This document shows positions 15,615 through 50,167 of a stretch of 64,000 bases of DNA, in pieces. Every line of letters begins with the position of its first letter. Position 1 is the stretch's first letter. Where the stretch lies: sequence record LC680884.1; one strand, given 5' to 3'. Under the pieces are notes generated by a model. It searched no databases and was not told the origin of the DNA. It worked only from the letters and a program-made list of their open reading frames with translations. The position numbers were made by a program, and so were the translations under genes.

Positions 15615-18600
15615 ATGAAAATAGATACATTAAATATAGATAAATTTATTACTTCTCATGCATGTAAAGAAGTAACAAATCCGGTTTACTTTAATATGGG
15701 AAATATACCAACTGAAGATGGATTATTTTCAACTAGTATTTTTGGTTATCCGGGAAGTAAAGAAAGAAAAATAATTTTTGGTTATATAGACTTAAAGAGA
15801 AAATTTCTCCATCCAGTAATTTATAAGCTTCTAACCTCTATGGATCGAAAAATTGCAGATTGTCTATCTGGAAAAAAATATTTTAAAGTTGAGGGCGGTA
15901 GGTTAGTTGAAGATAAAGATAATGGTAAAACTGGAGTTACCTATTTTTATACTATTTATGACCAATTAAAATTTAGTAATACTGGAACTGATAGAAGAAC
16001 AAGTTATCTTACATTATTAAATAAACTTGGTAAGGATGATATATTTATTGACAAATATTTAGTGATTCCGGCATTTTATAGAGATTATAATCCCTCAAAA
16101 TCTTCTAATGATACGATTAAAGCTGTTGATGAAGTGAATGACAAATATGCTAAATTAATTAGGTATAGCCAATCAATTTCTAAGGGTGAAGATTATGATT
16201 TTATGGGAGTAATAACAGAATCATCTATTCAGACTCTTTTATATGATATCTATGACTATTTTACATCCTCTTTAGCTGGTAAAAATGGTATGTTCCATCA
16301 AAACTCTTTAGGTAAATCTGTTGATTATGCAACTCGTAGTGTAATCTCAGCACCACGATTTAAGTCAAATAGCTGGAAGGATAACCCTATTAGATTTGGA
16401 TGGACTGGTATTCCCCTATCACAATTAGTGGTAGAATTTTATCCATTCTTTCTTAAATATATCCAAGATTATATTCTTGAACGTGAATCAGAACTTAGTA
16501 AATTTAAGCATAATGGAAAAGAGATAACTATCAGTAATATAAGAGAGCAGTTCTCTGAAGAAGCAGTAAAAAAGATGATCTCATTATACATTAAGTCTAT
16601 TGAAAGTCGTTTTAATAGTTTAATGATTAAAGATGATAAGGGGAATGAAATTCCTATTCCATTATATAGAGAAGAACTAGGGCGTAACTTTACATTAACT
16701 GATATTCTATTCATTGCGGCAGTTGATATTACCAAAGATAAACATGTATATGTAACAAGGTATCCAATAGAGCAGTATCGTATGTGACGTTCTCCTATAA
16801 GCATTTAATGTGAAATGGAGTAGATTTTATAATCTAAACTGTAAATGAGAACAAGTAAAAGATATGACCATTTTCATTGAAGACTTGTCGCTAATACTCC
16901 TACATGCATCTATTTTAAACTATATAAAATATTTGTATGAAGTTAGGTGAAGTCATCTGAATATTAGTAGTACTATAATACTAATAGATAGGGTGGGCGG
17001 TGCTATAATATGATGAGGAACACGAACCTTTTTATACTATATAAATTCAGGGTTTAGTAATACGGTACTGGTGAACGACCTGATTGTAAAGTGTGGTACA
17101 ATAGAAGTTTATATAGGGCAGAAGGCATCTAAGTTATAGCTATACTATCATTTACGGAACGTCAGAGATTCTATATAAGAGAAATTATAGTTGATACTCT
17201 TATATAGAAAGTCAGCAGACCATAGTAGTTATGAAGATGGGTAACTCCATTGGAGCGAAGGGTCATAGTCAGTTTAATAAAAATAATCGAACAATCACAA
17301 AACATAATAATAAATAGTTATGTGGAGTGATTTTAATGAGAAAATTGGATAATACTTCATTTGATTTAAGACTAAATCAAATACTAAAAGGTTACAAACG
17401 AATTGGTGAATATATTAATTCTAAAACAAAAATTTTAATATTACATGAAATTTGTAATAAAGAATTTGAGGCAAGACCTTGTAACTTATTACAGGGTTAT
17501 GGATGTCCTCATTGTAATTCAAAAGAAAAGTTAACTACAGAAAAATTTATCAATAAGGTTAAGGAATTAGTAAAAGATGAATATACTGTTTTGTCTAATT
17601 ATAAAAATTATCATTCTAAGGTAACAATGCGTCATAATAAATGTAAATTCATTTATGAAGTCAAAGCAGGAAATTTTACATCTCTAGGGAGACGTTGTCC
17701 TAACTGTTCAGGACTTATTAAGAAAAATAAAGAATATGTTCAAGAACAGTTAGACAAAATAAATCCTAATGAGTATAAAGTGATTGGTGAGTATATAAAT
17801 AATGTAACTCCATTAGAAATAATACATTTAGAGTGTAATACTATTAATAAATTTTCATTAAAAAATATTACATCTAATAAATTTTCATGTAAAAACTGTA
17901 AAATGAGTAGTGGGGAATTATTAATAAAAAATATTTTAAATAATATGGGAACAGAATATACCTATCAAAAAACTTTTAAAGAATGTAAAGATAGAAAACC
18001 CTTACCTTTTGATTTTTTTGTAGAGGAATTTAATGCTATAATAGAATATGATGGTAGACAACATTTTCTTCCTATCTTTGGTAACGATGAAAATGACCGT
18101 ATTAAAAAATTAGAATTAATACAAAAACATGATAATATTAAAAATGATTTTTGTAAGAAATATAATTTACCAATTCTTAGAATTAAATATGATACACCAA
18201 TCGATAGTATACCAATTCTTATTAAAAAATTTTTATTAAATTGATGGAACGCCTTATGCGATGAAAGTCGCACGTAGGGTGTGAAGTGGGGGAAAAAGAG
18301 GAGATAAAATCAAATCTTTACCTATCACTATAGAATATTTATCCAAGTAAAATAAGAATTCTTTCAACAAAGGAAACACGACCTCAAAAGCTGGAAGATA
18401 GATACTTACCTGATTATCCTGTTATATACCCTGACTATCCCGCAGAGGATGAACTTTTTGTTGATACAGTAATTCCTTATAATGGTTATTTAAAGGCTTT
18501 AGGCGGAGACTACGATAAAAATTAATATTATTTCTTTTTAAGGGAATACAGTGTCAAATAAACAAATAATTATTAATTATTTGGAGGTATTAATGTATGC

Positions 18601-20568
18601 CACATAAAAAGACACTGGACGAATTCAAAGAAGAAGTTAAATTACTAACTAACAATACCTATACAGTTTTATCCAATGAATATATTAACAATAAGACTAA
18701 AATCAAATTAAGGCATGAATTATGTGGAAATATATATGAGGTTAGACCTGATGTATTTCATAATGGTAGAAGATGTCCTCAGTGCGCTGATATTAATAAA
18801 GGTAAATCAAGATTAAAAAGCAATGATGAGTTTAAGAAGGAATTAAAAGAAAAGACTAATGGAAGACTTATAAGTCTTGAGAAATATATCAATATCGATA
18901 CCAAAATACTTTTCAGATGTAATGACTGTAATTATGAATGGAAGACTACTCCTTATTATGCTTTGAAAAATAGATGTCCTCAATGTTCTGGTAAAAGAAG
19001 ACTAACTACTGATGAGGTTAAAAGAAAAATTAGCTTAGTTACAAATAATGAGTATTCATTATTAGGTGAATATCGTAATAATAAAACGAAGATTAGATTG
19101 TTACATCATAGTTGTAATAAGGAGTATGAAGTTACAATTAAAAACTTTGATAATGGAAATAGATGTCCATATTGTGCATTTAAAAGTTCATCAAAAATGG
19201 AAAAAGAACTATCTTCTTTTATTAAAGGATTAGTTGTAGATAAAGTCATATGTAATGACAGGAAATTACTTGAAGGTAAAGAGATTGATATATTTATTCC
19301 TTCCAAAAAAATTGCTTTTGAATTTAATGGTTTATATTGGCATTCAGAGCAAATGGGGAAGAAAAGAAACTATCATTTAGAAAAATTAGAAAAATGTAAT
19401 AGTAAAGGGATTAGACTAATTCAAATTTTTGAAGACGAATGGGTTAACAAACCTCTCATAGTAAAAGAAAAAATAAAACACCTACTAAAATTAAATAATT
19501 CTACTAAAATATACGCTAGAAATTGTTATGTAGAAGTAATTGATAACAATTTTAAAAATGAATTCCTAGAAAGAAATCACATTCAGGGAAAAGATTTGTC
19601 ATCAATTAAATTAGGCTTATGGCTTCCAAAAGAAGATGGCGATGAACTTGTAGCGGTAATGACTTTTAGTAAACTTAGAAAAAGCCTAGGTAGAAATAGT
19701 GCTGATAATATTTTTGAACTATCAAGATTCGCTACCGATATGGACTATAGAGTAATAGGTGCTTTTAGTAAACTTCTCAAATACTTCGAGAGAAATTATG
19801 AGTGGAAAGAATTAATAACCTATGCAGATAAACGCTGGTCAGATGGCAATGTTTATATCAATAATAAATTTGAATTAAGTCATATTAGTAAACCCAACTA
19901 TTGGTATGTTAACGTTGAAAAAACTCAACGATTCCATAGATTTAATTATAGAAAGTCTAATCTCAAAAAGAAATTTCCAAAATTATATAGTGATGATAGT
20001 ACTGAATTTGAAATCATGGATAAAACTAGATTTAAAAGAATATGGGATTGTGGTAATTTAGTATTTACCTATAAAAGATAATAATCTACTGTCGTAGTAA
20101 AACCCTTTTAACTGCTGGAAAATCCTATATGGACAATCAGCATCCAAGCATCTTTAATTCATTTAAAGATGAAGGTTCAACGACTATCGAAACCACTCTA
20201 ACAGATCGTTGTGATAACGCTAGTTAGAAGGAAGGGAGTAGAGTACAGCCAAGCGGTAGAGGTATTCCGTAATAAGGTTATAATTCCTCTTTAAATGGAA
20301 ACGGAGGGCACAATTATATTGTGAAGATATAGTCTCATCTCTATAGTAATATAGAGCAGTTCATAAGAGAACGCAGTAGATGTAGCGAATCTACTGGAAG
20401 ATTTTGGGTGATACAGTATCTCTACGTGGAGTATTTAGTAAAGAAGCTAATGAAGAAGCAGAACGATTAATATGGGAAAAGAAGAATATGTTAGACCAAA
20501 TGGGACGAAACTCTCGTCAAATTGGGAATGAAGCAATACAAGCAATTTATTCTCTAACTAGAGAATAA
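15615..20568 (+). CDS. rpoC: Virion RNA polymerase beta-prime subunit, N-terminal half; spliced join(15615..16779,18332..18516,20407..20568), 503 aa
   Basis: Exon 1 carries DGLFSTSIFG, GKSVDYATRSVIS and VTRYP. Splicing restores YPIEQY-Q-NIYPSKI and the catalytic motif LGGDYD|GDTV (NADFDGD equivalent). The frame is continuous across both junctions. Confidence 0.93.
17301..17312 (+). promoter_or_regulatory. Intron-internal late promoter for the group II endonuclease
   Basis: AACA-TAATAA-TA, 24 nt upstream of the ATG at 17336. Confidence 0.65.
17336..18244 (+). CDS. Intron-encoded homing endonuclease: zinc-ribbon repeats plus EDxHD/Vsr-like PD-(D/E)xK domain
   Basis: Three H-x2-C..CPxC-type modules, then SSGELLI..LPFDFF..IIEYDGRQH. 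SD TGGAG. No RT motifs. Confidence 0.88.
   Translation: MRKLDNTSFDLRLNQILKGYKRIGEYINSKTKILILHEICNKEFEARPCNLLQGYGCPHCNSKEKLTTEKFINKVKELVKDEYTVLSNYKNYHSKVTMRHNKCKFIYEVKAGNFTSLGRRCPNCSGLIKKNKEYVQEQLDKINPNEYKVIGEYINNVTPLEIIHLECNTINKFSLKNITSNKFSCKNCKMSSGELLIKNILNNMGTEYTYQKTFKECKDRKPLPFDFFVEEFNAIIEYDGRQHFLPIFGNDENDRIKKLELIQKHDNIKNDFCKKYNLPILRIKYDTPIDSIPILIKKFLLN
18561..18572 (+). promoter_or_regulatory. Intron-internal late promoter for the group I endonuclease
   Basis: AACA-AATAAT-TA upstream of SD GGAGG and the ATG at 18597. Confidence 0.7.
18597..20081 (+). CDS. Intron-encoded endonuclease: zinc-ribbon repeats, EDxHD-like nuclease, C-terminal Hef/Mom-like GNAT-type domain
   Basis: Three CPxC modules; SKME..EIDIFI..IAFEFNGLYWH; C-terminal YAR..FLERNHIQG..ELSRF..GAFSKLLKYF..TYADKRWSDG..RIWDCG. 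Confidence 0.85.
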   Translation: MPHKKTLDEFKEEVKLLTNNTYTVLSNEYINNKTKIKLRHELCGNIYEVRPDVFHNGRRCPQCADINKGKSRLKSNDEFKKELKEKTNGRLISLEKYINIDTKILFRCNDCNYEWKTTPYYALKNRCPQCSGKRRLTTDEVKRKISLVTNNEYSLLGEYRNNKTKIRLLHHSCNKEYEVTIKNFDNGNRCPYCAFKSSSKMEKELSSFIKGLVVDKVICNDRKLLEGKEIDIFIPSKKIAFEFNGLYWHSEQMGKKRNYHLEKLEKCNSKGIRLIQIFEDEWVNKPLIVKEKIKHLLKLNNSTKIYARNCYVEVIDNNFKNEFLERNHIQGKDLSSIKLGLWLPKEDGDELVAVMTFSKLRKSLGRNSADNIFELSRFATDMDYRVIGAFSKLLKYFERNYEWKELITYADKRWSDGNVYINNKFELSHISKPNYWYVNVEKTQRFHRFNYRKSNLKKKFPKLYSDDSTEFEIMDKTRFKRIWDCGNLVFTYKR

Positions 20569-20579
20569 GGAGGATTTCT

Positions 20580-20759
20580 ATGTGGGGTTTTAAGATAAAT
20601 TTATTGGAAGGACTATTGTTAATTATACTAATTTTGTTAATGTTTATTATTTCTTTCCCTTGCTGGCTATTACAAAGATTTGGTTTTAAAGTAAAACAGT
20701 ATTCAAATTTTCTTTATAAAAATAATCAATACTTATTATTAGATATCAAACGTTATTAA
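20580..20759 (+). CDS. Small membrane protein (59 aa), absent from the ORF track
   Basis: SD AAGGAGG at the RNAP stop codon; MWGFKINLLEGLLLIILILLMFIISFPCWLLQRF. Confidence 0.65.
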   Translation: MWGFKINLLEGLLLIILILLMFIISFPCWLLQRFGFKVKQYSNFLYKNNQYLLLDIKRY

Positions 20760-20766
20760 CAAAAAA

Positions 20767-20797
20767 AAGAGTAAAGTCTTTTATAGACTTTACTCTT
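20767..20797. terminator. Bidirectional terminator
   Basis: AAGAGTAAAGTCT-TTTAT-AGACTTTACTCTT between convergent genes. Confidence 0.8.
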
Positions 20798-20803
20798 ATA
20801 GCA

Positions 20804-21577
20804 TTAAGTTTGATGAGGTACTACATATACTAGTCTAGATCTAATAGAACGTGTATATGCACTTGGTTCAACAAAACTAACTTCTTTTATTTTTGTTTTC
20901 ATCTCTTTATCTTTAAGTATATAATAACATTCTCTTCTTGAGTTAGCTAAGACATACTTGTACTTCTTACCAGTTACTTCATAAATCTTATTTGTCTGAA
21001 CACATGGAAAATTCAATATATCTAATTGGATATCCTTCTTAAATTTAGTAAGAAATTTGGTTCCTACAATGTCGGAACTTAGATTTTTTCCACCATTAAT
21101 ACTATAATATACATCATCTTCATCATTATCAATACTAATTCTTATAACATGATTGTTCCAAACAGTAGCAAATTCAACACTGGTCTTAGACAATTTAATC
21201 ATTTGTACAATTTTAAACATTAAGTCATCAGAATTAGAAAGAAGATCTATATTATGAGCAAGTGAAAAACGATTTTCAATTAGATTAAAACGATCTAGAT
21301 ATTTAGTTAAATAAGTAGAAACAACTTTTTGAGCATTTTGAATATATTCATATTCCCGCATCCTTTCTGATTCCAATTTCATTTGATCTTGATATTCTTT
21401 TTCTTCCTGAAGAGTTGCTGCTGATTCTTGTCTGGATTTAGTCATATTATCCTCTAATCTTTTTATGACACCATCCATGAGTTTAATAGTTTCATTACTC
21501 TGTTCAACCATCCTTCTTAGTGAATCAATTTCCTTATCCTTCTCCTTTGCCATAAACATTCTTTTAAACCAATTCAA
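20804..21577 (-). CDS. Hypothetical protein with an N-terminal coiled coil
   Basis: 257 aa, TTG start with SD GGGAGG. Confidence 0.7.
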   Translation of the reverse strand: MNWFKRMFMAKEKDKEIDSLRRMVEQSNETIKLMDGVIKRLEDNMTKSRQESAATLQEEKEYQDQMKLESERMREYEYIQNAQKVVSTYLTKYLDRFNLIENRFSLAHNIDLLSNSDDLMFKIVQMIKLSKTSVEFATVWNNHVIRISIDNDEDDVYYSINGGKNLSSDIVGTKFLTKFKKDIQLDILNFPCVQTNKIYEVTGKKYKYVLANSRRECYYILKDKEMKTKIKEVSFVEPSAYTRSIRSRLVYVVPHQT

Positions 21578-21626
21578 TCAAAAACCTCCCCATTAAGTAT
21601 TTTGACGAAATCTTTATACATTGACC

Positions 21627-21970
21627 AAAAAAAGCCCTATGGGTGGGGTTGCCCCCACCCATAGTAAAAGTAGTCGTCGTATATGTTTAAATAATAGAAC
21701 TTCTAATTCTTACTGCATCAATAGGGAATTTTCCCAGACAATCATTTTTCTCAACTGTGTTTGTCATAGCGTATTCTCCTCTCCATTTTAAAAAATCCTT
21801 TTTCTCTTTATAAGGATACGGAGAATGGTGAAAGATCTTGCTATAATCACTAGGTGGGTATTGTCATTCGTTCAATACACTTTTCGTGGTATGTAGCCTG
21901 ATGAATATTTTTGTCTTTCCAACCATTCTTTTATTACCTTATTTATTACTAGTTTTTGTGTTTCTTATTG
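21627..21970 (-). ncRNA. Candidate early structured transcript or small-ORF leader RNA
   Basis: Early-type motif at 21979..21991, about 340 nt without a long ORF, local hairpins, and a 12-bp GC-rich GCAA-tetraloop stem (21637..21664) followed by a U7 tract. Confidence 0.45.
21687..21767 (-). CDS. Possible 26-aa peptide MTNTVEKNDCLGKFPIDAVRIRSSII
   Basis: Strong SD GGAGAGGAG upstream of the ATG, inside the candidate transcript. Confidence 0.45.
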   Translation of the reverse strand: MTNTVEKNDCLGKFPIDAVRIRSSII

Positions 21971-22010
21971 TTACAGTAATAATATATACTTGAAAATCTT
22001 TTTGATACGG

Positions 22011-22022
22011 AACATTATATTA
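22011..22022 (+). promoter_or_regulatory. Late promoter
   Basis: AACA-TTATAT-TA upstream of 22051. Confidence 0.75.
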
Positions 22023-22050
22023 GTATTAAATATTATAGGAGTGATAGAAA

Positions 22051-22737
22051 ATGGCTGATAATATTAATATCGATATTTCTAAAGAATTAAGTATTCTCCA
22101 GAATGAATTAGAAAAAATCGATGAATTATATGATGAAACAAAAGAGCATTATGATAAAGTTAAAAATAGTGGCAGTAATGGAACTCTTACATTTATAGAA
22201 AAACAAACCTCTAATTTAATTTCACTTAAAACTGGTAAGATATCTATTATTCAGCAAATCGTAAATGCTAAGAAAACTGAAGCTGATATTGCACTTAAAA
22301 ATCAAAGAAATCAAGAGGGTGGCGATAACTCTGATATTAGAGAAATTGTTGCTGGTGTTCATGATTATATTCTTAATAATAAAAAAGATAAAAAATTTAG
22401 TGAAATTATAAATAAACAAGAATCTGAAGATATTTCTGGATCACAGAAAAATGATGAAGAAGTAGATGCATTATTAGAAGCAAGATTGAAAGAAGAACAA
22501 AATGAAAGCAATTCTGAAAAGGAAGAGACAGTAATAGAGGAAAAAATAAATGACTATCAATATGTAGTAGATATGGAGAAAAATATCTATTGTCTGGATG
22601 GCGACTATAATATTATAGAAGATGCTGAAATACCAGATCTGCAAATAGAGATTACAGAAGAAAATGGGGAATACATTGCAAAAGATGAAAATGGAAAAAT
22701 TTATGATGTAGTAGAATTTACTGAAGATGAAGAATAA
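22051..22737 (+). CDS. Acidic late hypothetical protein with an N-terminal coiled coil
   Basis: 228 aa, SD AGGAGTGA, late promoter, followed by a hairpin. Confidence 0.7.
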   Translation: MADNINIDISKELSILQNELEKIDELYDETKEHYDKVKNSGSNGTLTFIEKQTSNLISLKTGKISIIQQIVNAKKTEADIALKNQRNQEGGDNSDIREIVAGVHDYILNNKKDKKFSEIINKQESEDISGSQKNDEEVDALLEARLKEEQNESNSEKEETVIEEKINDYQYVVDMEKNIYCLDGDYNIIEDAEIPDLQIEITEENGEYIAKDENGKIYDVVEFTEDEE

Positions 22738-22740
22738 AAT

Positions 22741-22773
22741 AACCAAGGATATCAAATAATGATATCCTTGGTT
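22741..22773 (+). terminator. Terminator hairpin
   Basis: AACCAAGGATATCA-AATAA-TGATATCCTTGGTT. Confidence 0.75.
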
Positions 22774-22867
22774 TAATTAAATAATATTGTTCTGCTTTTA
22801 TTGAGGGGTTTATTTTATTATAATTATGTTTTATTGTAATTAATTCTCTAAAAATAAAAAAAGATTA

Positions 22868-22880
22868 AAGAATATATTAT
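22868..22880 (+). promoter_or_regulatory. Early-type promoter motif
   Basis: AAGAATATATTAT upstream of the zinc-ribbon/NADAR/SbcC run. Confidence 0.55.
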
Positions 22881-22921
22881 AAATAAGTTAATAAAATAAA
22901 AGAAAAAATGGAGTGATTTAA

Positions 22922-23065
22922 ATGAGTTTTACTATTAGATGCGATGAATGTGGATCAAACAATATTAGTTTTATAGTAGACGATGATGAATTTGGTTCAT
23001 TACTTGTAATACAATGTGAAGAATGTGATAATTTTGAAGAATATAATCAAGCAGATATATACTAA
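22922..23065 (+). CDS. Acidic zinc-ribbon microprotein (47 aa), absent from the ORF track
   Basis: SD TGGAGTGA; MSFTIRCDECGSNNISFIVDDDEFGSLLVIQCEECDNFEEYNQADIY (CxxC-x21-CxxC). Confidence 0.75.
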   Translation: MSFTIRCDECGSNNISFIVDDDEFGSLLVIQCEECDNFEEYNQADIY

Positions 23066-23143
23066 ATAATTTATATTCTTGTAACTAAAAAAATTATTTA
23101 AAAACATGAAAATGAAGAATATTAAACTAAGGTGGGGATGTTG

Positions 23144-23563: not shown

Positions 23564-23586
23564 AGACATATGGGAGAGTTGAGAGA

Positions 23587-26322: not shown

Positions 26323-26334
26323 GGGGGAATTTAA

Positions 26335-39007: not shown

Positions 39008-39051
39008 AATAAGTAAACCTATATATAATTTAATATATAGGTTTACTTATT
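39008..39051 (-). terminator. Terminator hairpin
   Basis: 19-bp stem AATAAGTAAACCTATATAT / ATATATAGGTTTACTTATT. Confidence 0.8.
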
Positions 39052-39054
39052 TAT

Positions 39055-39771: not shown

Positions 39772-39785
39772 AGTCCTCCAATAAT

Positions 39786-40556: not shown

Positions 40557-40632
40557 TAGACTTCCTCCTATATATGTCAACTAATTTTAATTAAATTCAT
40601 ATGAATTTGTTAGTAATTCTCTTCAATATAAA

Positions 40633-40662
40633 AAAGAATGTAGATTTTCATCTACATTCTTT
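40633..40662 (-). terminator. Terminator hairpin after the terminase gene
   Basis: AAAGAATGTAGAT-TTTC-ATCTACATTCTTT. Confidence 0.8.
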
Positions 40663-40665
40663 CAT

Positions 40666-43600
40666 TTATCTATTTAAACTAGTAATAAAATTTAGGCTTT
40701 TCATTCTTTTTTGCTTTCTAATATTATTATCATTCTCATTATGATCTTCAAAAAATCTACTTTCATTCTTATACATTTCTAATAATATTTCACTCTGTGA
40801 TTTTTCACCACTATTAATTTTAGACAATGCATGAATGTTTCTAGCTCTATCTTTATTATTTTCTTCATTCTCATTATTATCGCCATCACTGATGACTTTA
40901 ACAAATTTATTTATATTATTTCCATATAAGAAAGCATAGCATGCCACTAGCCATGAGAATAATGTATCATCATGACCTCCATCCCTATGCTCAATCTTTC
41001 CTTTCTTATTTCTTTCTAATGTTCTTAATTCTTCAAAAATATATTTACTTGTAAACACATATGGAGTATCATTAACTGCATTACTAAGAATCTCATTGAT
41101 CATTATATCCCGACTATCTTTACTAGTAGTAACCCCATAAACTCTTGTTTTAGTCTTAACTGTCTTTTTAGATGATCTTTTTGGATCATCAACTTTCTTT
41201 TCTCCTTTTACTTCTCTAACTTCATAATATAAGTTATTAGCTACTTCTGAACGTAGTAGATCTTGTATTAAAGAGATACCTAAGTTATTTCGTTCTGGAA
41301 TAATGACACCATTAGGACAAAATTCTAATACTAGGTGTATAACCAAATCTTTTAAATCAGGTAAAGATATATTATTACTTCTAAATACTGCTTTTTGAAC
41401 CATATCTTTAGGATCAATAATAGATATCACTGTAAAATCTCGATTCAAACCTGCTCCAATATCTATACCGATTAGCCATGATTTTTTAAATATATTTCGC
41501 ATTTCACTGAAAATTTCAAATTTATATCTTTTCATTACATAAAACTTACCAATAGGTTCACCTGCATGTTGTCCAATTTCTGCTAATTGTTCCTCTGAAA
41601 AAGGCGAAGTATCGTTAGCCAATGTCCATTCCAATAATATTTCACGTTTAATTTTTAATAAGTCATTATTGAGCTGACGACATTGTTTTTGATACCATTT
41701 CTCATCATGTCCTAACTCTTTATAATTAAATACTAAATAAACAAAGTCATTTCGAGAGTTCTGTTCAATATATTTTTTAATTTCATCAATATCCCAATCA
41801 TACCAAGCTTCATCAAATGGACATGCATCATCAATCATACCCTTACAATATTTACCCATTTCTGTATCAAGATCATTCATTTATCTTCCATTAGATTCGC
41901 TACATCTAATGCGTTCTCTTATGAACTGCTCCATGTTACCATGAAGATGAGACTATATCTTCATCTCATTGAGATGCTTCCCTTTTCCAACCTCAATCAC
42001 TTAGGTTGTACTCTACTCCCTTCCTTCTAACTAGCGTTATCACAACGATCTGTTAGAGTGGTTTCGATAGTCGTTGAACCTTCATTGTTATAAACAACAA
42101 TGCTTGGATGCTGATTGTCCATATAGGATTTTCCAGCAATTAAGGAAGATTCAATTACATTATTACTAATGTATTGCCCAATAGTTTAGGAGTTGTTGTA
42201 ATTAATTTTCCGTAAGGAGTACCATTACGCTGTGCGGCTTCTGATGCTTTTGATAGTGCTGGTGCAGCACTCATAATTACCTTCCATTAGATTCGCTACG
42301 TCTAATGCGTTCTCTTATGAACTGCTCTATGTTTCCATAGAGATGAGACTATATCTTCACTCCAGTATTTAATACCTTCATCATGCTCTCCTTTTCCTTT
42401 CGCTTGAAAGTACTCTACTCAATATAATACAAATTATATTTTTCGATAGTCGTTGAACCTTCATTGTTATTTATAACAATGCTTGGATGCTGATTGTCCA
42501 TATATCCTTTAGATTATTACACTTTGGTACTAAAGACTTTAGGAGTTTCCAGCAGTTAAGAGAGTTTTAATACGCCAGTTACACCAGTTTAGCGTATACC
42601 GTATCATTATATTTTAAAAATGCAAATTCATCATCATTTATCTTCATATAGATTCGCTACGCCTATACCGTTCTCTTATGAACTGCTCCATGTTACCATG
42701 AAGATGAGACTATATCTTCATCTCATTGAGATGCCTTCCATTTCCAACTCCAATCGCTTGAGTTGTACTCTACTCCCTTATCCTTATCTAGCATTATCAC
42801 AACGATCTGATAAGTCGGTTTCGATAGTCGTTGAACCTTCATTGTTATTTATATAACAATGCTTGGATGCTGATTGTCCTAAAAGGATGTTCCAGCAGTT
42901 AAGAAGGATTCATTATAATATCACTATTATAATGGGCTAAAAATTTAACCATATAATTGGTACTGTACAACCACGCAAGTTACCTTCATATAGGTTCGCT
43001 ACGCCTATACCGTTCTCTTATGAACTGCTCTATGTTACCATAGAGATGAGACTATATCTTCACCTAAATACGGCGCTCCCCTTTTTGAATACCTATAGCT
43101 TGTATTCTACTCTACTCCCTTATCCCTATCTAGCGTTATCACAACGATCTGATAAGTCGGTTTCGATAGTCGTTGAACTTTACTTTTAAAAGTCTTAGCT
43201 TCTGATTATCCTTGGAAGGACGTTCCAGAAATTAAAGGAGTTTATACTGAGCCATAGTTAGTTAACCCAGTTTGTCAGCGTCAGTAACAGTCCTAGCAGT
43301 ACTCATTGCATCAATTTTATTATTATTCTTTGCACATGAAATTTGAGCTAAGTTATTTGTATCTTTTTTAGGATCTAAATGCGTTTTTAAATAACTTGGT
43401 AATAATTCTGTTATATCATTGAAACGTTTAATATTTAATTGGGAATCGGCGTATTGTTTATTACTAAAAATCATATGAGTATTTTTGGTAGCCCAATGAT
43501 ATACCCATATATATCGACATACAGCCCCAATTGTTTTTCCATTCTGACGAGGTAGTATCTCAATCATATCAATATTATTTTCCATAAGAAACATTTGACC

Positions 43601-43867
43601 AAGATTAGCTCTGTGTAGCATGAAATGAATAGAACCACCCGATTCAGGAATTCGCACTACTTCCCTCAAGAAATACCAAAAGTTAGTCATTACTTCAACC
43701 TGTATTCTTACCTTTTGTTCATCAGTTAAATTTGGATCATATGGATCAACACCTTGTAATGTTTCATCATTCAATTTTAAAAAGAATTTATTATTTTTTA
43801 TACCTTGATCTTTTAGAAACTTCCAGATCTTAATAAAACTTAGGTTTCTAGTAGAATAATCATACAT
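40666..43867 (-). CDS. terL: Terminase large subunit; spliced complement(join(40666..41877,42188..42271,42591..42634,42948..42975,43265..43867)), 656 aa
   Basis: Walker A PRQNGKT. Splicing restores KLG|RGCTVPIIW-Y-DEFAF (Walker B), VYA|SAAPAL and TTTP|NDLD. RNase H nuclease IGIDIGAG..DDTLFS. The frame is continuous over all four junctions. Confidence 0.94.
41878..42187 (-). mobile_element. Group IA intron, ORF-less (terL intron 4, 310 nt)
   Basis: Exon ends CCT, intron ends AAATG. P, Q, R (GTTCAACGACTA) and S (AAGATATAGTCT) present. Confidence 0.92.
42272..42590 (-). mobile_element. Group IA intron, ORF-less (terL intron 3, 319 nt)
   Basis: IGS GGCGTAT pairs with the exon end ATACGCT; the preceding ACT pairs with the 3' exon AGT; R and S conserved. 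Confidence 0.93.
42635..42947 (-). mobile_element. Group IA intron, ORF-less (terL intron 2, 313 nt), inside the Walker B strand
   Basis: TGGT|..AAATG|ATGATGAA restores W-Y-D-E; R and S conserved. Confidence 0.93.
42976..43264 (-). mobile_element. Group IA intron, ORF-less (terL intron 1, 289 nt)
   Basis: Starts with TAA. IGS GCTCAGT pairs with ACTGGGT, and ACTATG pairs with the 3' exon CGTGGT; R and S conserved. Confidence 0.94.
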
Positions 43868-43893
43868 TTAATCAACCTCCTATTATGATATAT

Positions 43894-43905
43894 TAATAGA
43901 ATGTT
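43894..43905 (-). promoter_or_regulatory. Late promoter for terL
   Basis: AACA-TTCTAT-TA. Confidence 0.75.
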
Positions 43906-43929
43906 TGTACCGTATTAAAATATAAAACT

Positions 43930-43942
43930 AAGTATATATTAT
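43930..43942 (+). promoter_or_regulatory. Early-type promoter motif
   Basis: AAGTATATATTAT; the same 13-mer occurs on the minus strand at 21979..21991. Confidence 0.65.
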
Positions 43943-43973
43943 ATATGAGAAAGAGTGAAAGGAGAGAAAGTCA

Positions 43974-44687
43974 TTGGTACGAAAAGAGAGAAGAAATATT
44001 GACAAGGAAATAATAGAATACTTTGGAATCAATTATGAATTAGAGGATGTAATTAAATTCTTTAAAAGAAACAAAGATGTGATTACGAATAATGAATTAC
44101 AGACAGTAATTATAAAATTTGGTGGAGATAGAATACTTTCTAATGAAGAAGTAGGACAGATCGTAAATCTATCATCAGCAAGAGTAAATCAGTTAGTATG
44201 GACAGCATTTGAAAAATGTAAAAATGAAGAAATACAAGAAGGTAAAAGAAAGAAAAATTTAACATATCAAATTGATAAAGATTTACTAGATTTAAGAACG
44301 TTTAACTTATTAAGACGGAATGGTTTAGATAATCTAAGTAAATTAATAGATTATATGAGTAAGAAAAGATTAAAGAGTATTGATAAACTTGGTGATCTTT
44401 CTGAAAAAATGATATTAACTGCTTTAGAAACAATGGGAATATCCGATAAGATAATTACTGAATATAAGAAAACTCATGGAATAGAAGGATTTGAGTATAA
44501 ATTATATGGTGCTTTTATAACATTTGAAAATAGTGATAACTCCATTTTGGATTATTTTGCTATACCTGAAAATGAAGAAACTGAGAGTTATATAAGAAAC
44601 CAATTTCCAGATAAAAATATAACTAGTATTCAATATTCCCCTGTTAGTGTAAATGGATTTAGAATCCTACTAACTAAACTAACATAA
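43974..44687 (+). CDS. Sigma70 region 4-like HTH fused to an RNAP alpha-CTD-like domain
   Basis: ITNNELQTVIIKFGGDRILSNEEVGQIVNLSSARVNQLVWTAFEK (sigma4-like) and LDLRTFNLLRRNGLDNLSKL..IDKLGDLSEKMILTALETMGI (alpha-CTD-like). Confidence 0.8.
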   Translation: MVRKERRNIDKEIIEYFGINYELEDVIKFFKRNKDVITNNELQTVIIKFGGDRILSNEEVGQIVNLSSARVNQLVWTAFEKCKNEEIQEGKRKKNLTYQIDKDLLDLRTFNLLRRNGLDNLSKLIDYMSKKRLKSIDKLGDLSEKMILTALETMGISDKIITEYKKTHGIEGFEYKLYGAFITFENSDNSILDYFAIPENEETESYIRNQFPDKNITSIQYSPVSVNGFRILLTKLT

Positions 44688-44820
44688 GACATCTTAGAGA
44701 TTCACCTGCATAAACTAGTTCAGGTGAATTTTTTTTTTCTTTTTTGAGTTTCAAGATGAAGTTTTCTGGTTAAAATAAAACATCTAGAAATACCAACTCT
44801 CACTCAAGGAGGAATTTGAA

Positions 44821-45009
44821 ATGAGCAAAGCGGAGGTCAAAGAACTACTTGATGGTATTGATGAAATTAGTTTTGATTTTGTAGAATTAGATGATGATAG
44901 CAATAGCGAATTTATCGGAGAACTAAATGATATGGAAGATGAATTGTATGATATTGGACCATTTGCTACTTATATAGTTGATAATCTTGGACAATTAATA
45001 ACTGAATAG
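44821..45009 (+). CDS. Small highly acidic protein (62 aa)
   Basis: SD AAGGAGG; 19 D/E versus 2 K. Confidence 0.75.
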   Translation: MSKAEVKELLDGIDEISFDFVELDDDSNSEFIGELNDMEDELYDIGPFATYIVDNLGQLITE

Positions 45010-45013
45010 TTAC

Positions 45014-45048
45014 AATAAAGAAGGACAGATACTTTGCCCTTCTTTATT
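45014..45048. terminator. Bidirectional terminator
   Basis: AATAAAGAAGG..CCTTCTTTATT between convergent genes. Confidence 0.7.
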
Positions 45049-46015
45049 TTTTTAATAAAAGAGTATTATCCTCACCAAAATCTTTATTCTGCTTATTATT
45101 TAAATCAATTAGTACTTTCTTAATCAACTCTTTCTCTAATTCTGTTTCAGCAGTTTGATATTCTTTCTTGAGAACATCAATAACTCCTTTTCTTCTTAAA
45201 TAATAGAAGTTTAAATTTTTCCTTATCCAATTAATAAATACATTCGTACTAATTTTATGAGTTGAGTTAGTATGATTTTGAAGCATTGAGAGTGTCTGAT
45301 ACATCTCATCAGCATATCCATATTTAACTGCTAAACTATCACTATATATTTCTCTCTCTGAATAATATTTATTTGCAACAAAATCCATAAGAGAACTTGT
45401 ACCCATTACAATCATAACCAAACCTACAAAACCTATAATTGGGCTCATTACAGTTAATGGAACTGATAAAGTTCTCTTACCCATTCTAACGGTCATAGAG
45501 AGTACTGCCATAGCTAATCCCATGCCATAACCAATATTAGCCATATTCTTAGAATTTTCTTCATCCCTAAGAGCATTTTGAACTTTAACATATACTTTAT
45601 GTCCAATTTCATGAATTAAAATTGCAGTTAGCATTCTAGCTGTTGCTCCTTCTCTTTTAAATAGGTTTAAAAGAGATCCTTCAATTTCAATTGATACATT
45701 ATGACAATCGATTAACTGATAACCTTTTTTCTTAGATTCAATGGCTTCTAAATATTGTCCTTTCATTTCTTCATAAGAAGGGAAAATTCTCATACCATAA
45801 CTTACTTTATTACTCAATGTTGGATGAAGAAAAATTTTACAATCTATATTAAAAGTACTCTTCAAGAGTTTTTCTATTTTTGATATATTCCTTTTAAAAC
45901 CAGCATCTTTAAAATTCTTCGATGGTAGTAGATTAAGTATTTCTTCAAAGCAGTCATCTAATTGATCCAATTCTGTTCTATGATAAATTTTTTCTAGTAA
46001 AATAGTATCTACCAT
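45044..46015 (-). CDS. Zincin (HExxH) metallopeptidase-like protein downstream of the capsid gene
   Basis: AILIHEIGH, then a hydrophobic segment, then EREIYSDSLAVKYGY (M48-like ExxAD pattern). SD AGAGGTG gives a start at 46015. Confidence 0.7.
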   Translation of the reverse strand: MVDTILLEKIYHRTELDQLDDCFEEILNLLPSKNFKDAGFKRNISKIEKLLKSTFNIDCKIFLHPTLSNKVSYGMRIFPSYEEMKGQYLEAIESKKKGYQLIDCHNVSIEIEGSLLNLFKREGATARMLTAILIHEIGHKVYVKVQNALRDEENSKNMANIGYGMGLAMAVLSMTVRMGKRTLSVPLTVMSPIIGFVGLVMIVMGTSSLMDFVANKYYSEREIYSDSLAVKYGYADEMYQTLSMLQNHTNSTHKISTNVFINWIRKNLNFYYLRRKGVIDVLKKEYQTAETELEKELIKKVLIDLNNKQNKDFGEDNTLLLKK

Positions 46016-46081
46016 ACATCTACACCTCTTAAAATAAATATCAGTTGTAACCGTTATGGTCACAACTGATATTTTTATTTA

Positions 46082-47677
46082 TTATCCATTATATTGAGAA
46101 ACAAGAGTACCATCATTGTTCTCAATTTTGATTTTGCATACCATTGGAAGGAACTCTTCAAGGGTATGACGTTTAGTCATCATAATGGAAGGAATATTAG
46201 GATTACGAGTGTTCAGGTAGTTGTGTACAACATTGAAAGTGTACGGATAGTACTTGAACGTCATAAATTTATTAGTAAGTGGAACCATGAACATTGTCAA
46301 TTCGCCTTGAGGAATCAAGTCAGAAGAAACAATTGTGTAACGGCTTGCACCAGAAACAGCTCCAATACTGTAATCTACTTCAATACCATTTTGAGCATCT
46401 GATACTCGGTTAAATGTCCAAGTAACATTTGGAATCAAAGCAGTATCAAGTGGGTTCCCAACAATTACAAAGTAACCTTGGTAGTAGTAAGTTTCAGATT
46501 TAATTTTTTGAGCAAAGTAATCAATTACTCGTTTGATACCATCCAACCAGTCTCTAGGATTTCCAGCAAACTGAGGTGCAGGATGAACGTTAAATTTACC
46601 CATATAAGTAGGGTTAGATTGGAAAGCCGCATCAATGAAATTATAAATTTCTTGGTCAACTTTTTGAGCTGTAACGTTAGACATTGTGTCTACCACTTCA
46701 TTAGCACCATCAATTTGATAAAGTGCCATTGTATCAGTTAGCATTTCAAGTGGTAGAGAAGCCTCTAAGTGTTCGCCAGTTCCGATAGTGATATCTCTAC
46801 GTTCAATATCGAAAGATACGTTAGTTGCTCTGTTATGAGCCTCAGAAGATACATAACCAAGGAATACAACTTTTTTAACTGCTTGACGAAGAGATACTAA
46901 GCTAACAGTACCTTTTTCTGGATCAACAGCACCCATAAGTACGTCAGAAGTTACAGTACCATCAGAGTGTTTAGCTTTAACTTCAGCATATAGTTTGTTG
47001 TTAATATCAATTTTAGAGTTAACTTTTACTTTAACTGTTTCAGCAGTCTCAGCTGTTCCAGTCGCACTTGCCGCAGAAACTTCAACTTCAACAATATGGA
47101 AACGGCGATCAATTGCATCTCCAGCTTGTGCAGAAGCACCTACATCAGCAAGAAGATCTTTGTTATCCAAAGGTAGCTCATAAGCTTGAGAAGAAAGTTT
47201 TGTTTTTTCAGCAAGTCCATTATCTAAAGAACGAAGAGATTCTGGAAGATAATGTTTTTCACCTGATACTGAATCAATGATATAAGGTTTAGAGAATGAT
47301 ACAGAGAAAGCAGGTGTTTTAACAGGTTCAGTAGGAATAGCATATTTCAATGCAATCTTAGCCCACATTTTACGAATAGTTGGCATAGATAGAGACGCAA
47401 TTGGAGGGATACCTGCAACTACGGACTCTTGAAGGATTGCTTGACGGTTGTTTGCAAGTAATTGACGCATATCTGCTTCTTCAGTTGCATCTAAGCCTTC
47501 TACTAATTTATCTACATAAGCACTAAAAGTGGATGCTTCAGAAAGAACATCACTGAAGCCTTCTCCAAGGATGTTTACTTGTTGAGTTTGTAAGAAATAT
47601 TGATGACTTTCTTTTAATGTTTGACTGAATTCATCAGTTGTTCCAGTTGAATGATTAGTTCGATATTCTACGGACAT
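46082..47677 (-). CDS. Major capsid protein precursor
   Basis: 531 aa, two tandem late promoters, CGT/GCT-rich codon usage, N-terminal propeptide ending near AILQE|S, directly downstream of scaffold-like genes. Confidence 0.88.
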   Translation of the reverse strand: MSVEYRTNHSTGTTDEFSQTLKESHQYFLQTQQVNILGEGFSDVLSEASTFSAYVDKLVEGLDATEEADMRQLLANNRQAILQESVVAGIPPIASLSMPTIRKMWAKIALKYAIPTEPVKTPAFSVSFSKPYIIDSVSGEKHYLPESLRSLDNGLAEKTKLSSQAYELPLDNKDLLADVGASAQAGDAIDRRFHIVEVEVSAASATGTAETAETVKVKVNSKIDINNKLYAEVKAKHSDGTVTSDVLMGAVDPEKGTVSLVSLRQAVKKVVFLGYVSSEAHNRATNVSFDIERRDITIGTGEHLEASLPLEMLTDTMALYQIDGANEVVDTMSNVTAQKVDQEIYNFIDAAFQSNPTYMGKFNVHPAPQFAGNPRDWLDGIKRVIDYFAQKIKSETYYYQGYFVIVGNPLDTALIPNVTWTFNRVSDAQNGIEVDYSIGAVSGASRYTIVSSDLIPQGELTMFMVPLTNKFMTFKYYPYTFNVVHNYLNTRNPNIPSIMMTKRHTLEEFLPMVCKIKIENNDGTLVSQYNG

Positions 47678-47713
47678 TGATCATTACTCCTTTTCTTAAT
47701 TATTAGATTTTAA

Positions 47714-47786
47714 TAATTTTTTGTTTAGATCTCTCTAATATAAAATCTAATAAATTGATTTATAATTTTTTTACTATTAAATTGTT
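47714..47786 (-). promoter_or_regulatory. Two tandem late promoters for the capsid gene
   Basis: AACA-ATTTAA-TA (47775..47786) and AACA-AAAAAT-TA (47714..47725). Confidence 0.7.
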
Positions 47787-47788
47787 TA

Positions 47789-48430
47789 TTACTTGGAAGA
47801 AGAAAATTTGTTAAATAGGTTGACCAGTAAGTTAATTTCACTTTTTGTATATACGAAAACAGTTTTTACTTTTTCATAATCCATTGTCTTAATTTTGTCA
47901 GTTAACATAATTTTGGTACTATCTTTTAGATTATATAATTTATCTTCGATATATTCAACAAGTTCATAATTCTTACTCTTATTTTCTTCTGTATCTAAAT
48001 ATTCCTTATAAGATGAAACTTTATCTAAAAAATTATCGATAGAAGTGTAGATTGTCTTATATGACTTATACAATTGTAATTTTTTATCATTATCAGTAGG
48101 ACTATCATCTTGTTCATTATCCAAATCTCCTGAATCAGCATCCCCTTGATCATCTGAATCGCCAGTATCTCCATCTGAAGGATTTGAATTATCATCTCCT
48201 CCATCTAAAGATTCCGGTGAATTACCATCATTAGTTTCTTCAGATTTACTATCTGTTTCATCTTCTGGATGAGCAGGGTCATTAGAATGTCCAACAGATA
48301 AGTCTTCAAGACTATCCATACCTACATCATCATCGTCTTCATCTTCTTTAAGGAAAAAATTATTATTATGTTTTGTATCTTCCATTAATTTTTTATTAAA
48401 ATCAATTAGAAGGGTATCAAAATCTGTCAC
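47789..48430 (-). CDS. Acidic-linker protein, candidate prohead scaffold/core
   Basis: 213 aa, GTG start, D/S/G-rich disordered N-half after FFLKE, helical C-half; lies between protease and capsid. Confidence 0.6.
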   Translation of the reverse strand: MTDFDTLLIDFNKKLMEDTKHNNNFFLKEDEDDDDVGMDSLEDLSVGHSNDPAHPEDETDSKSEETNDGNSPESLDGGDDNSNPSDGDTGDSDDQGDADSGDLDNEQDDSPTDNDKKLQLYKSYKTIYTSIDNFLDKVSSYKEYLDTEENKSKNYELVEYIEDKLYNLKDSTKIMLTDKIKTMDYEKVKTVFVYTKSEINLLVNLFNKFSSSK

Positions 48431-48449
48431 ATATATACACTCCCTTCAT

Positions 48450-48908
48450 TTAATCTTTAATGACTTTTAGTTTATCTAAGTCACTTTTTAATTTATTTTT
48501 CATTTTAATCATATTTTGTCTTTTCTTTTCATCTGATTCTCTAGTTAATCGGTCTTCAATATATTCTAATTTACTAGAATAAAGATGAATTAATTTTTCT
48601 CTTCTATTAGCATCATTACGTCTTCTAATAACTGAACTAGTATATAAAGTAATAAGACCGATAACAGGACTGATAACGGCAATACTTCCAATAATGATAC
48701 AACGTGTTAATAGTCTAGAAAAATCTGGCATATTTTCAATTAATCTATCATCACTAGAGGAATGGAGTTTTTTAATTATATTAAATATACCTTTAGTAGT
48801 CTTATCGACATCAGTTGCTAAACCTTCTTTTAATAGAAAATATTCTTCTCTATATGAATCAAATTCTTCATGTTCAACTAATAATAATGACTCATATTTG
48901 GATAACAT
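48450..48908 (-). CDS. Putative head protein with a hydrophobic hairpin
   Basis: SD AGGAGG gives a start at 48908 (MLSKY); LLVE and LLKE motifs; CIIIGSIAVISPVIGLITLY. Confidence 0.6.
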   Translation of the reverse strand: MLSKYESLLLVEHEEFDSYREEYFLLKEGLATDVDKTTKGIFNIIKKLHSSSDDRLIENMPDFSRLLTRCIIIGSIAVISPVIGLITLYTSSVIRRRNDANRREKLIHLYSSKLEYIEDRLTRESDEKKRQNMIKMKNKLKSDLDKLKVIKD

Positions 48909-48943
48909 TTTGATGTACCTCCTTTTAATATTATGATTTAACT

Positions 48944-48978
48944 TAATTATATGTTTTTTATTAGAAAACATATAATTA
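48944..48978. promoter_or_regulatory. Back-to-back identical late promoters forming an inverted repeat
   Basis: AACATATAATTA on the minus strand (48944..48955) and on the plus strand (48967..48978). Confidence 0.8.
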
Positions 48979-49015
48979 ATAAATTTAATTAAGTTATTAG
49001 AAAGGCGGCTAAATA

Positions 49016-50167
49016 ATGGATCAAAATTGTGGTTTTCTAATTATTGAATCTACATCAGAACCAGTTAAACCTAATATTATTGAGCATAATAAAGATAATG
49101 TTGTAATTGAAGCTATTCTTCAAGAGGCAGAAGCTGGTAATAGAAATAGAAGGGAATATGCATTTGAAGCATTAGATGGTGCTATTCGTTCTCCTCAAAT
49201 TCAAGAAAAGTTAAGACGTAAATCATTGTTCGGAGAGGCTGGTAGGGTTGCCATTCATAGTAGAAATACTATGTCTAAACTCTCTTAATTGCTGGAAACT
49301 CCTTAGAGCTTATTAGACCACAACGTGACTGGTAACAGTGAGCGTGAAGGTTATAAGAACTAATAAGATTGGACAATCAGCAGCTTTATTGGTTAATAAT
49401 ATTTGTACATATATTTACCAATGGAGTTCAACGACTATCCCAAATGGGAGTACACTATAAGCATAGTGGAAATAGAGAGGTTCTTAACAGTAATGCTGAA
49501 GAACTTGATATAGTCTCAACTCTAGGGAAACTTAGAGCAGTTCATAAGAGAACGGTATGGAAGTAGCGAATCCATATGAAGATATTTGCACCCTCTTTCG
49601 GATAAAATGGAAAGACAAACGTACATTGATCAAACTAGAATGTCTCATGTTATTGAGAAATTATGGTGGGAACAAAAATTACTAAAAGGTGTGGTAGCAA
49701 CTACTAACACTGCTGTTGGTAAAGATATGGAAGGTTTAATTAGACAAGGTACTGAAGTAGCATTTTCAATGAGAGGTCTTGGTGGTGTTACTCGTAAAGT
49801 GAATGGACTAACACGAGTTGAAAAACCTCTTCACATTGTTACTTGGGATTGGGTAATCTTCCCTTCTCATTCTAATGCTTATCAGACAAATATTATTAAA
49901 GAAGATGCTATTCATCCTATGAATAAGAGAATTCTTAATGAAGGTCTAATGGTGTCAGTGGCTCAAGATGAAATCCTTAATTACATTAAGGAAGAGAGTC
50001 AAAATATTAAAACAACAGTTGATCATCTTGGTTTAGATGAAAGAACTGCCAAATTAGGTGAAGATGGTAAAACAGTTAGCTTCAATACTGAAGATGGTAA
50101 AGCTGTTTTATTTATTGAAGATGAAATTAAAAAAGAAATTGATAATTTCCTTTTAATTCAATTTTAA
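49016..50167 (+). CDS. Prohead maturation protease (T4 gp21-like); spliced join(49016..49243,49589..50167), 268 aa
   Basis: NRNRREY, GEAG|HP restored by splicing, FSMRG, TWDWVIFPSHSNA. Confidence 0.93.
49244..49588 (+). mobile_element. Group IA intron, ORF-less (345 nt), immediately before the catalytic His codon
   Basis: GCTGGT|AGGGTTGCCA..TTTG|CACCCT; P AATTGCTGGAA, Q AATCAGCAG, R GTTCAACGACTA, S GATATAGTCT. Confidence 0.93.

Follow-up and report, generated by a model that had tools for sequence, protein, structure and literature searches.

By what route group I introns arrive at new sites, and how they are held there, is an acknowledged open question. It is raised here by a 64,000-nt window, the whole stretch of DNA that was analysed, given as one strand of sequence record LC680884.1 (base 1 of the window is base 62001 of LC680884). 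Within it, six group I introns interrupt three late genes of a Bacillus phage: one lies in the N-terminal gene of the virion RNA polymerase (RNAP) beta' subunit, four lie in the terminase gene terL and one lies in the prohead protease gene. A preliminary description of the sequence proposed that a single core had recently been copied into these six sites, each time with a re-tailored guide sequence, or that gene conversion was under way between the cores, and it set both against homing from allele to allele. Our analysis of the introns, of their paralogues elsewhere in the genome and of their counterparts in related phages suggests a recombining pool of modules within a family of 12 copies, with allele-level transfer superimposed. 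We put the probability of this reading at roughly 0.7.

Six group I introns in three late genes of phage PBS1

Megablast identified the window as Bacillus phage PBS1, with 100% identity to MF360957 and LC680884 over two queried regions. AR9 is 98.9–99.6% identical to the window regions and Internexus ~98.5%; Goe21 aligns piecewise only, and BpSp is a more distant relative with ~71% DNA identity. AR9 and Internexus carry the same introns at the same sites as PBS1. In Goe21, the terL, virion RNAP beta' and protease genes are uninterrupted, all six intron sites are empty, and an Rfam search of these three loci returned zero intron matches. The intron-less Goe21 alleles were aligned to the window, which gave the exact bounds of all six introns; the outer coordinates proposed earlier match them. 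The features are listed below, with a slash marking the insertion point in the protein sequence.

15615..20568, + strand: virion RNAP beta' N-terminal gene; exons 15615-16779, 18332-18516 and 20407-20568
18517..20406, + strand: RNAP beta' group I intron, bounds from the intron-less Goe21 rpoC1; Rfam core 20045-20356, 84 bits
20091..20098, + strand: RNAP intron internal guide sequence (IGS); pairs with the last 8 exon bases to give an 8-bp P1 that has U.G at the splice site
20169..20247, + strand: 79-nt tract identical to terL intron 4; 3' strand of P6, J6/7, 5' strand of P7 and P7.1 hairpin, assigned from the Rfam alignment of terL intron 4
40666..43867, − strand: terL gene, five exons, 43867-43265, 42975-42948, 42634-42591, 42271-42188 and 41877-40666
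42976..43264, − strand: terL intron 1, 289 nt, at ADKLG/RG; guide 43246-43252; P1 of 7 pairs; Rfam 82.3 bits
42635..42947, − strand: terL intron 2, 313 nt, in Walker B at IIW/YDE; weak guide 42935-42937, P1 of 3 contiguous exon pairs; Rfam 93.5 bits
42272..42590, − strand: terL intron 3, 319 nt, at VYA/SAAP; guide 42570-42576; P1 of 7 pairs; Rfam 72 bits
41878..42187, − strand: terL intron 4, 310 nt, at TTTP/ND; weak guide 42177-42179, P1 of 3 exon and 2 intron pairs; Rfam 85.2 bits
42007-42085, − strand: 79-nt tract in terL intron 4, identical to 20169-20247 of the RNAP intron
49016..50167, + strand: prohead protease gene, two exons, 49016-49243 and 49589-50167
49244..49588, + strand: prohead protease/scaffold gene group I intron, 345 nt, at GEAG/HP; guide 49250-49253; Rfam 66 bits

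The six introns are already known from their annotation in AR9 (GenBank KU878088; Lavysh et al., 2016, Virology 495:185), where the record joins terL from five pieces and RNAP beta' (g145) from three, the latter with two intron endonucleases, and shows the prohead protease gene to bear an intron. According to a later preprint that cites Lavysh et al. (2016), spliced AR9 mRNAs were determined experimentally, the RNAP, protease, terminase and gyrase genes are split by introns, and self-splicing was reported for AR9 in the same study (bioRxiv 10.1101/2020.12.14.422802).

Splicing at the Goe21-derived bounds restores all three reading frames. The joined terL exons comprise 1971 nt (656 aa) and the joined protease exons 807 nt (268 aa), both with no internal stops and with the lengths of the Goe21 alleles, and the spliced tail of RNAP beta' reads through the GGDYDGD motif. 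The RNAP group I intron is inserted in this catalytic motif of beta' (GGDYD/GD), and all six window introns lie in conserved motifs. In terL, the exons separating the introns measure 28, 44 and 84 nt, with the four introns packed into 160 coding nt. This explains why annotation pipelines split the gene into ‘hypothetical proteins’ in the PBS1, Internexus and other records.

To assign the introns to a class, the Rfam model RF00028 was used with its curated gathering score of 50 bits. Five introns were matched at this score (20045-20356+, 41929-42198-, 42325-42605-, 42686-42956- and 43028-43274-; 72–93.5 bits), and the sixth, in the protease gene, was matched with laxer filters (49231-49537+, 66 bits). 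All six matches extend over the full length of the model. In every case a U precedes the 5′ splice site, the last intron base is G, and blocks P, Q, R and S can be recognised, as had been described. In the 3′ helices P9 and P9.2, for which covariation was computed, pairing holds in 97.8% of cells and compensatory changes occur in 13 of 18 pairs, a level reached by none of 500 shuffles. The Rfam alignment places an 87-nt insertion between P7 and P3′ of terL intron 4, with hairpins visible by eye; the inserts of terL intron 3 and of the protease intron differ from it. Judged from these sequence features, the six introns are probably functional IA-type group I ribozymes, with P7.1/P7.2 inserted between P7 and P3′.

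The proposal that each copy carries a guide for its own exons holds for four introns and is weak for two. P1 has 8 contiguous pairs in the RNAP intron, 7 in terL introns 1 and 3, and 4 in the protease intron, where they are conserved in BpSp; in terL introns 2 and 4 it has only 3 exon pairs.

A credible open reading frame (ORF) is found in the RNAP intron only, in agreement with the earlier count of five ORF-less copies; the ORFs of the other five introns had no family match. Two small ORFs are probably not genes: a 65-aa ORF with a TTG start in the protease intron (49369-49566, +), without a match in PHROGs, the only collection searched, and, opposite terL intron 2, an antisense ORF of 78 aa (42620-42856, +), without a match in Pfam or PHROGs.

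A constant 3′ block shared by a whole intron class

The preliminary description named a P9 block among the elements shared by the six cores, which we find as an exact 18-mer present six times in the window against 0.02 copies expected by chance. The block lies directly 3′ of the end of the Rfam model (e.g. 20356-20373) and forms a 4-bp hairpin between P9 and P9.2; it is a conserved element of a phage intron class, outside the coverage of RF00028. The exact 18-mer also occurs in >109 IMG/VR contigs of all sizes among the matches listed. We built an alignment of the class from the six PBS1 copies and 14 IMG/VR contigs carrying the 18-mer. In this alignment the S block, the 18-mer (a small hairpin, termed P9.1) and the P9.2 loop are constant, and the stems of P9 and P9.2 covary freely. 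The shared block thus exists as described, but it is constant across the class and uninformative on recent copying; since it is present in >109 unrelated contigs, we rejected it as a sign of such copying.

The introns are mosaics of modules from a family of 12 copies

The remainder of the PBS1 genome was retrieved to count the family beyond the window. The exact 18-mer is found in 12 copies in PBS1, half of them in the window. Of the other six, a virion structural protein gene has two, the RNAP beta-subunit gene has three, and one lies between two endonuclease genes. The RNAP beta-subunit gene has a fourth intron, without the exact 18-mer block. The copy between the endonuclease genes lies at LC680884 ~137357-137825 (~11357-11825 of the retrieved segment L012), a locus that is 58–64% covered in AR9 and Internexus.

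Whole-intron pairwise identity among the six window copies is 56–84%, and the protease intron is the outlier, with 56–61% identity to the others. Within these modest values lie long exact matches. The 79-nt match between 20169-20247 (+) in the RNAP intron and 42007-42085 (−) in terL intron 4 is 100% identical and maximal, as the preliminary description had it. Outside the window, one of the RNAP beta-subunit introns holds a third near-identical copy of the tract, with exact matches of 78 and 76 nt. P3, which lies outside the tract, differs between the RNAP intron and terL intron 4, yet it is internally consistent in each. The search for further mosaic tracts was productive: exact matches of 78 nt join terL intron 4 to the RNAP beta-subunit intron rpoB_2, 71 nt join terL intron 3 to rpoB_4, and 66 nt join terL introns 2 and 4. 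Shorter ones connect terL intron 3 with the virion structural protein copy vsp_a (60 nt), rpoB_3 with rpoB_4 (58 nt) and terL intron 1 with rpoB_3 (57 nt). The long tracts therefore pair different introns in different modules.

We then cut the introns at their invariant blocks and compared them segment by segment. The nearest neighbour shifts between segments. The intron rpoB_4 is 95% identical to terL intron 3 in P3–P6 and 58% identical to it in P7–P8, where its identity to the copy between the endonuclease genes is 89%. Likewise, the RNAP intron is nearest to terL intron 4 in P3–P8 and to another copy at its 3′ end. In a Sawyer-type permutation of polymorphic sites, the run shared by the RNAP intron and terL intron 4 has a global P of 0.0002–0.009, depending on the sequence set.

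Could this pattern arise without any exchange, if each site was invaded independently from other phages and purifying selection kept the members of one ribozyme class alike? Such an origin would account for the constancy of the 18-mer, the P9.2 loop and blocks R and S in >109 unrelated IMG/VR contigs, and for Blast matches to many unrelated phages being limited to the conserved 3′ or P4–P6 part. However, the exact tracts of 57–79 nt cross P7.1, the P6 loop, P8 and the P9/P9.2 stems, which are variable in other phages. A 22-mer of P7.1 was not found in genome and metagenome collections, its only IMG/VR match being an AR9 contig with five copies; this variant is confined to the lineage, so the family likeness in the variable parts is real and lineage-specific. 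The differences between AR9 and PBS1 also form clusters that copy paralogues, as set out below. Refutation of an origin by constraint alone is in part already demonstrated, and we regard it as improbable.

Differences between AR9 and PBS1 copy paralogous introns

The orthologous introns of PBS1, AR9 and Internexus were aligned and every difference was listed. The AR9 RNAP intron shows six changes within 50 columns, from P9 to P9.2, relative to PBS1 and Internexus, and is otherwise identical to that of PBS1. All six AR9 states are present in terL intron 3 only. In terL intron 4, AR9 has three differences in seven columns of the P6 loop, and all of them are the states of terL introns 2 and 3. 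Such clusters and paralogue matches would not be expected from independent point mutation. Together with the mosaic tracts and the run test, they speak for the gene conversion between cores that had been offered as one of two explanations. We also asked whether the terL introns differ at a raised rate. This is not clear, with 17 AR9–PBS1 differences in 1231 nt of introns against 14 in 1815 nt of exons (4 in 156 nt of mini-exons); since the density is not clearly above that of the exons, the signal lies in the clustering and the paralogue matching, not in the rate.

Identical tracts among repeats raise the concern that copies were collapsed, or a consensus copied among introns, during assembly or polishing. 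Exact stretches of 36–79 nt can mislead short-read polishing, and the AR9-specific tracts come from one assembly. Nevertheless, both PBS1 records agree with the window at 100% identity over the queried regions with the RNAP and terL introns, AR9 and Internexus are independent witnesses to these introns and their sites, and the spliced exons are intact. The 79-nt tract is below ordinary read length and has unique flanks; it is exact in AR9 too, and the Internexus copies differ at 2 positions. An assembly collapse, the one artefact named in advance as a danger to the 79-nt identity, is therefore very improbable.

The two PBS1 records (LC680884 45300-50000 and MF360957 60504-65673) differ by ~470 nt in the four-intron RNAP beta-subunit gene. 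A HNH endonuclease is annotated in this gene in one of the records, and the virion-protein intron locus differs by ~60 nt. As intron or endonuclease content seems to differ between the records, turnover seems to be ongoing in laboratory stocks.

Exon patches point to exchange between phages

The exons beside and between the introns diverge from Goe21 by 10–16%, mostly at synonymous positions, compared with ~1% elsewhere. Between the terL coding sequences of PBS1 and Goe21 there are 33 differences in 1971 nt, two of them codon-changing, and 19 of the 33 fall at coding positions 598–759. This patch starts 5 nt before intron 1 and ends at the last base before intron 4. The difference rate is 10% within 30 nt on either side of the junctions, where 19 of the 33 are located, and 0.8% outside (Fisher P 6e-12). 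The protease gene has 16 differences, all of which leave the encoded protein unchanged, and 11 of them are found no more than 20 nt from the junction on either side (P 4e-12). RNAP exon 2 (18332-18516, 185 nt) differs at 30 positions (16%) and exon 3 at 1 in 162 nt, with 2 amino-acid changes over the 427 nt compared. In both RNAP and terL, the last intron marks the exact end of the divergent patch. The Goe21 allele has no U at position −1 in three of the six cases.

We read these patches as the footprint of recombination between diverged alleles, by which introns were gained or erased. The preference in the preliminary description for movement within the genome over exchange between alleles is contradicted: the Goe21 sites are empty, and the exons around them carry divergent, mostly synonymous patches.

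The protease intron and the case for transposition

BpSp has intron-less terL and beta' genes and an intron at exactly the PBS1 protease site, with an identical 4-nt guide. From its 5′ end through P4, the PBS1 protease intron is 85% identical to that of BpSp, against 52–64% to its PBS1 paralogues. In the last 78 nt this order is reversed, with 80–87% identity to the paralogues and 71% to BpSp. The contrast between the 5′ module and the 3′ end appears to favour exchange; it is supportive, not decisive, because part of the 3′ value reflects class constraint. A comparison of site occupancy had been proposed; it shows Goe21 empty at six of six sites and BpSp carrying a same-site protease intron whose 5′ module is close to that of PBS1. 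The BpSp intron (1434-2163 of the retrieved segment L006) is 752 nt long and contains an annotated ORF on the opposite strand, gp190 (372 nt), inside the P5/P6 region.

These data bear on recent transposition within the genome, by reverse splicing and reverse transcription or by off-target endonuclease cuts, followed by re-tailoring of the guides through point mutation. The P7.1 module is lineage-specific and multi-copy, as recent spread would predict. The 5′ modules of the RNAP intron and terL intron 3 are 80% identical; two base pairs, each altered on both strands, distinguish their P1 helices, and their target 7-mers share five of seven positions. A TGG(G)T-type target precedes terL intron 1, terL intron 2 and the protease intron, and reverse splicing is listed as the proposed route to ectopic sites (review PMC3984707). 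When P1 target-site similarity was considered as evidence for reverse splicing, though, it proved to be within chance, with ~0.4 such pairs expected among 15 by our own estimate. Whole-intron identity of just 56–84%, the mosaic structure, the 12 copies of mixed modules and the protease site shared with BpSp all count against one core recently copied into six sites. In addition, AR9 was reported to be without a reverse transcriptase (bioRxiv 10.1101/2020.12.14.422802), the group II intron in the RNAP beta' gene encodes an endonuclease and not a reverse transcriptase (PMC12350094), and direct evidence for a reverse-splicing pathway is lacking according to the same review (PMC3984707). No reverse-transcriptase domain was detected in the intron ORFs examined, a result that applies to these ORFs, as the whole genome was not screened. 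Transposition of this kind is thus unlikely, though less so than constraint without exchange, and reverse splicing of whole introns may be how some positions originated historically.

Endonuclease and neighbouring introns of the RNAP beta' gene

Two further features of the RNAP beta' gene complete its anatomy.

16780-18331, + strand: group II intron between RNAP beta' exons 1 and 2; Rfam RF02004 80.7 bits, RF00029 55.2 bits
18597..20081, + strand: intron homing endonuclease ORF, 494 aa, identified by Pfam, phrog_559 and the AR9 annotation

The 494-aa ORF is positioned between the 5′ splice site and the guide of the RNAP group I intron. It matches Pfam CapR (2.7e-13) and a treble-clef zinc finger, and the HNH endonuclease family phrog_559 (E 2.8e-154); the corresponding AR9 gene, g146, is annotated as a ‘Hef-like homing endonuclease’. 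We considered whether the ORF (18597-20081) might be an RNAP exon and rejected this, as the AR9 annotation, Pfam and PHROGs all identify an intron endonuclease. The ORF of the group II intron (17327-18244, 305 aa) has weak CapR and zinc-finger matches, which suggests an endonuclease rather than a reverse transcriptase. Both introns of the AR9/PBS1 beta' gene, the group II intron at 16780-18331 and the group I intron downstream, have been published, together with the homology of their endonucleases (PMC12350094, NAR 2025). That study (Fig. 5A) covers the same gene, and its topic is group II introns and the endonuclease family, not the kinship of the core to the terL and protease introns.

In the Staphylococcus jumbo phage Madawaska (110700-114700), an RNAP beta' intron lies one codon downstream of the PBS1 site, and its endonuclease ORF has the same unusual placement, after the 5′ splice site and ahead of the guide. 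The endonucleases of the two introns share 27% identity (E 5e-11). The 5′ module does not decide whether the introns are orthologous, as it is 72% identical between Madawaska and the PBS1 RNAP intron, against 80% for terL intron 3. In MarsHill and LY01, beta' breaks at residue 389, the site of the PBS1 group II intron. A 103-kb IMG/VR contig (L038, 6500-6890) carries an intron of the same class with an AT-rich insert in P6, in an ORF interrupted at VDVGRKG/DTVI. It was dropped as a candidate same-site RNAP intron because its exon context is unlike an RNAP gene; it represents an unrelated site in an unrelated phage.

Discussion

We suggest that the PBS1 introns form a lineage-specific family with copies placed in conserved motifs of virion and late genes, and that these copies are chimeric, not recent duplicates of one entire core. 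Each would retain a site-specific 5′ module that must match its own exon, made up of the guide, the 5′ strand of P3 and, in introns that have one, P2. The modules P3–P6, P6–P7–P7.1, P7.2–P8 and P7′–P9–P9.2 would be swapped by homologous recombination or gene conversion during phage replication, with the invariant ribozyme blocks probably serving as homology anchors. A convertant with a replaced guide would leave an essential gene unspliced and its lineage would be lost, so that guides would stay ‘tailored’ while the cores look alike; as all host genes are essential, selection would keep the guide module in place.

Between phages, introns would be gained or erased by recombination of alleles, which would drag along flanking and inter-intron exon sequence. 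For such allele transfer the RNAP intron may use its own endonuclease, and the five ORF-less introns may depend on trans-acting endonucleases or on plain recombination in mixed infections. New positions might also arise by core recombination, in which a site-matched guide module is joined to catalytic modules pooled across the genome; this part of the model is tentative.

Several points weigh against a recombining pool with allele transfer. The run test may be inflated by rate variation along the alignment. That the 18-mer, the P9.2 loop and blocks R and S are constant in >109 unrelated viral contigs is a matter of constraint, not of exchange, and these class-wide 3′ blocks weaken the argument from the 3′ module of the protease intron. 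The AR9 state derives from a single assembly of repeated sequence, in which cross-mapping of reads could in principle create the AR9-specific tracts; the PBS1 state is backed by two records. No partner endonuclease was identified for the ORF-less introns at the terL and protease sites. Four close genomes are too few to tell whether the exon patches record intron gain in the PBS1 lineage or intron loss in Goe21. Finally, the module pool, the AR9/PBS1 conversion tracts and the Goe21 exon patches are undescribed in the accessible literature, and the AR9 genome paper may cover part of them.

Domain shuffling has reportedly been seen before in phage introns, among the td, nrdB and nrdD (sunY) introns of phage T4, in work attributed to Bryk and Belfort in 1990. 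T4 likewise has several IA-type introns per genome that share core blocks, and recombination between the blocks gives chimeric introns. The T4 case involves three introns in nucleotide-metabolism genes and laboratory selection, whereas PBS1 has 12, in virion and late genes, with evidence of natural exchange and with four copies within 160 coding nt. Staphylococcus phage Twort has three introns in one gene. As in PBS1, several group I introns that are related and mostly without ORFs lie close together within one gene, but the phage group and the genes are different, and exchange between genes is not the point made there. Two introns have been described in Twort nrdE (PMC113830, cited in PMC12908238).

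The jumbo phage PhiPA3 has an intron endonuclease in an RNAP gene (Birkholz et al., 2024, PMC11620839). It resembles PBS1 as a jumbo phage in which a gene of a multisubunit viral RNAP has a group I intron with an endonuclease. Some close relatives have the intron and others do not, which makes competition between co-infecting phages a plausible role. Unlike that of PhiPA3, the PBS1 endonuclease belongs to a family with CapR repeats and a zinc finger, and five of the six PBS1 introns have no endonuclease. Collaborative homing in trans pairs ORF-less introns with free-standing endonucleases (PMC3984707; T4 mobE, PMC2790892), and it shares with PBS1 the ORF-less introns that are polymorphic among close phages and the co-converted exon flanks. 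The AR9 introns, at 98.9–99.6% identity, are the same elements as those of PBS1. Enhanced intron mobility in an ancestor is an idea that later papers credit to Lavysh et al. (2016). The pattern of module swapping among the introns appears to be undescribed so far.

Twelve related introns in one Bacillus subtilis phage genome are a rare natural data set. They are accompanied by four sequenced near-identical phages in which occupancy differs at every examined site, and by BpSp with a distant same-site protease intron. These data separate class-wide constraint, as in the 18-mer, from module exchange within the genome and from allele transfer between phages, and they suggest why guides remain site-specific while cores appear copied. 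If new positions do arise by such core recombination, ORF-less introns could colonise and hold many essential genes without reverse splicing or an endonuclease of their own, and ongoing exchange would keep the pool uniform.

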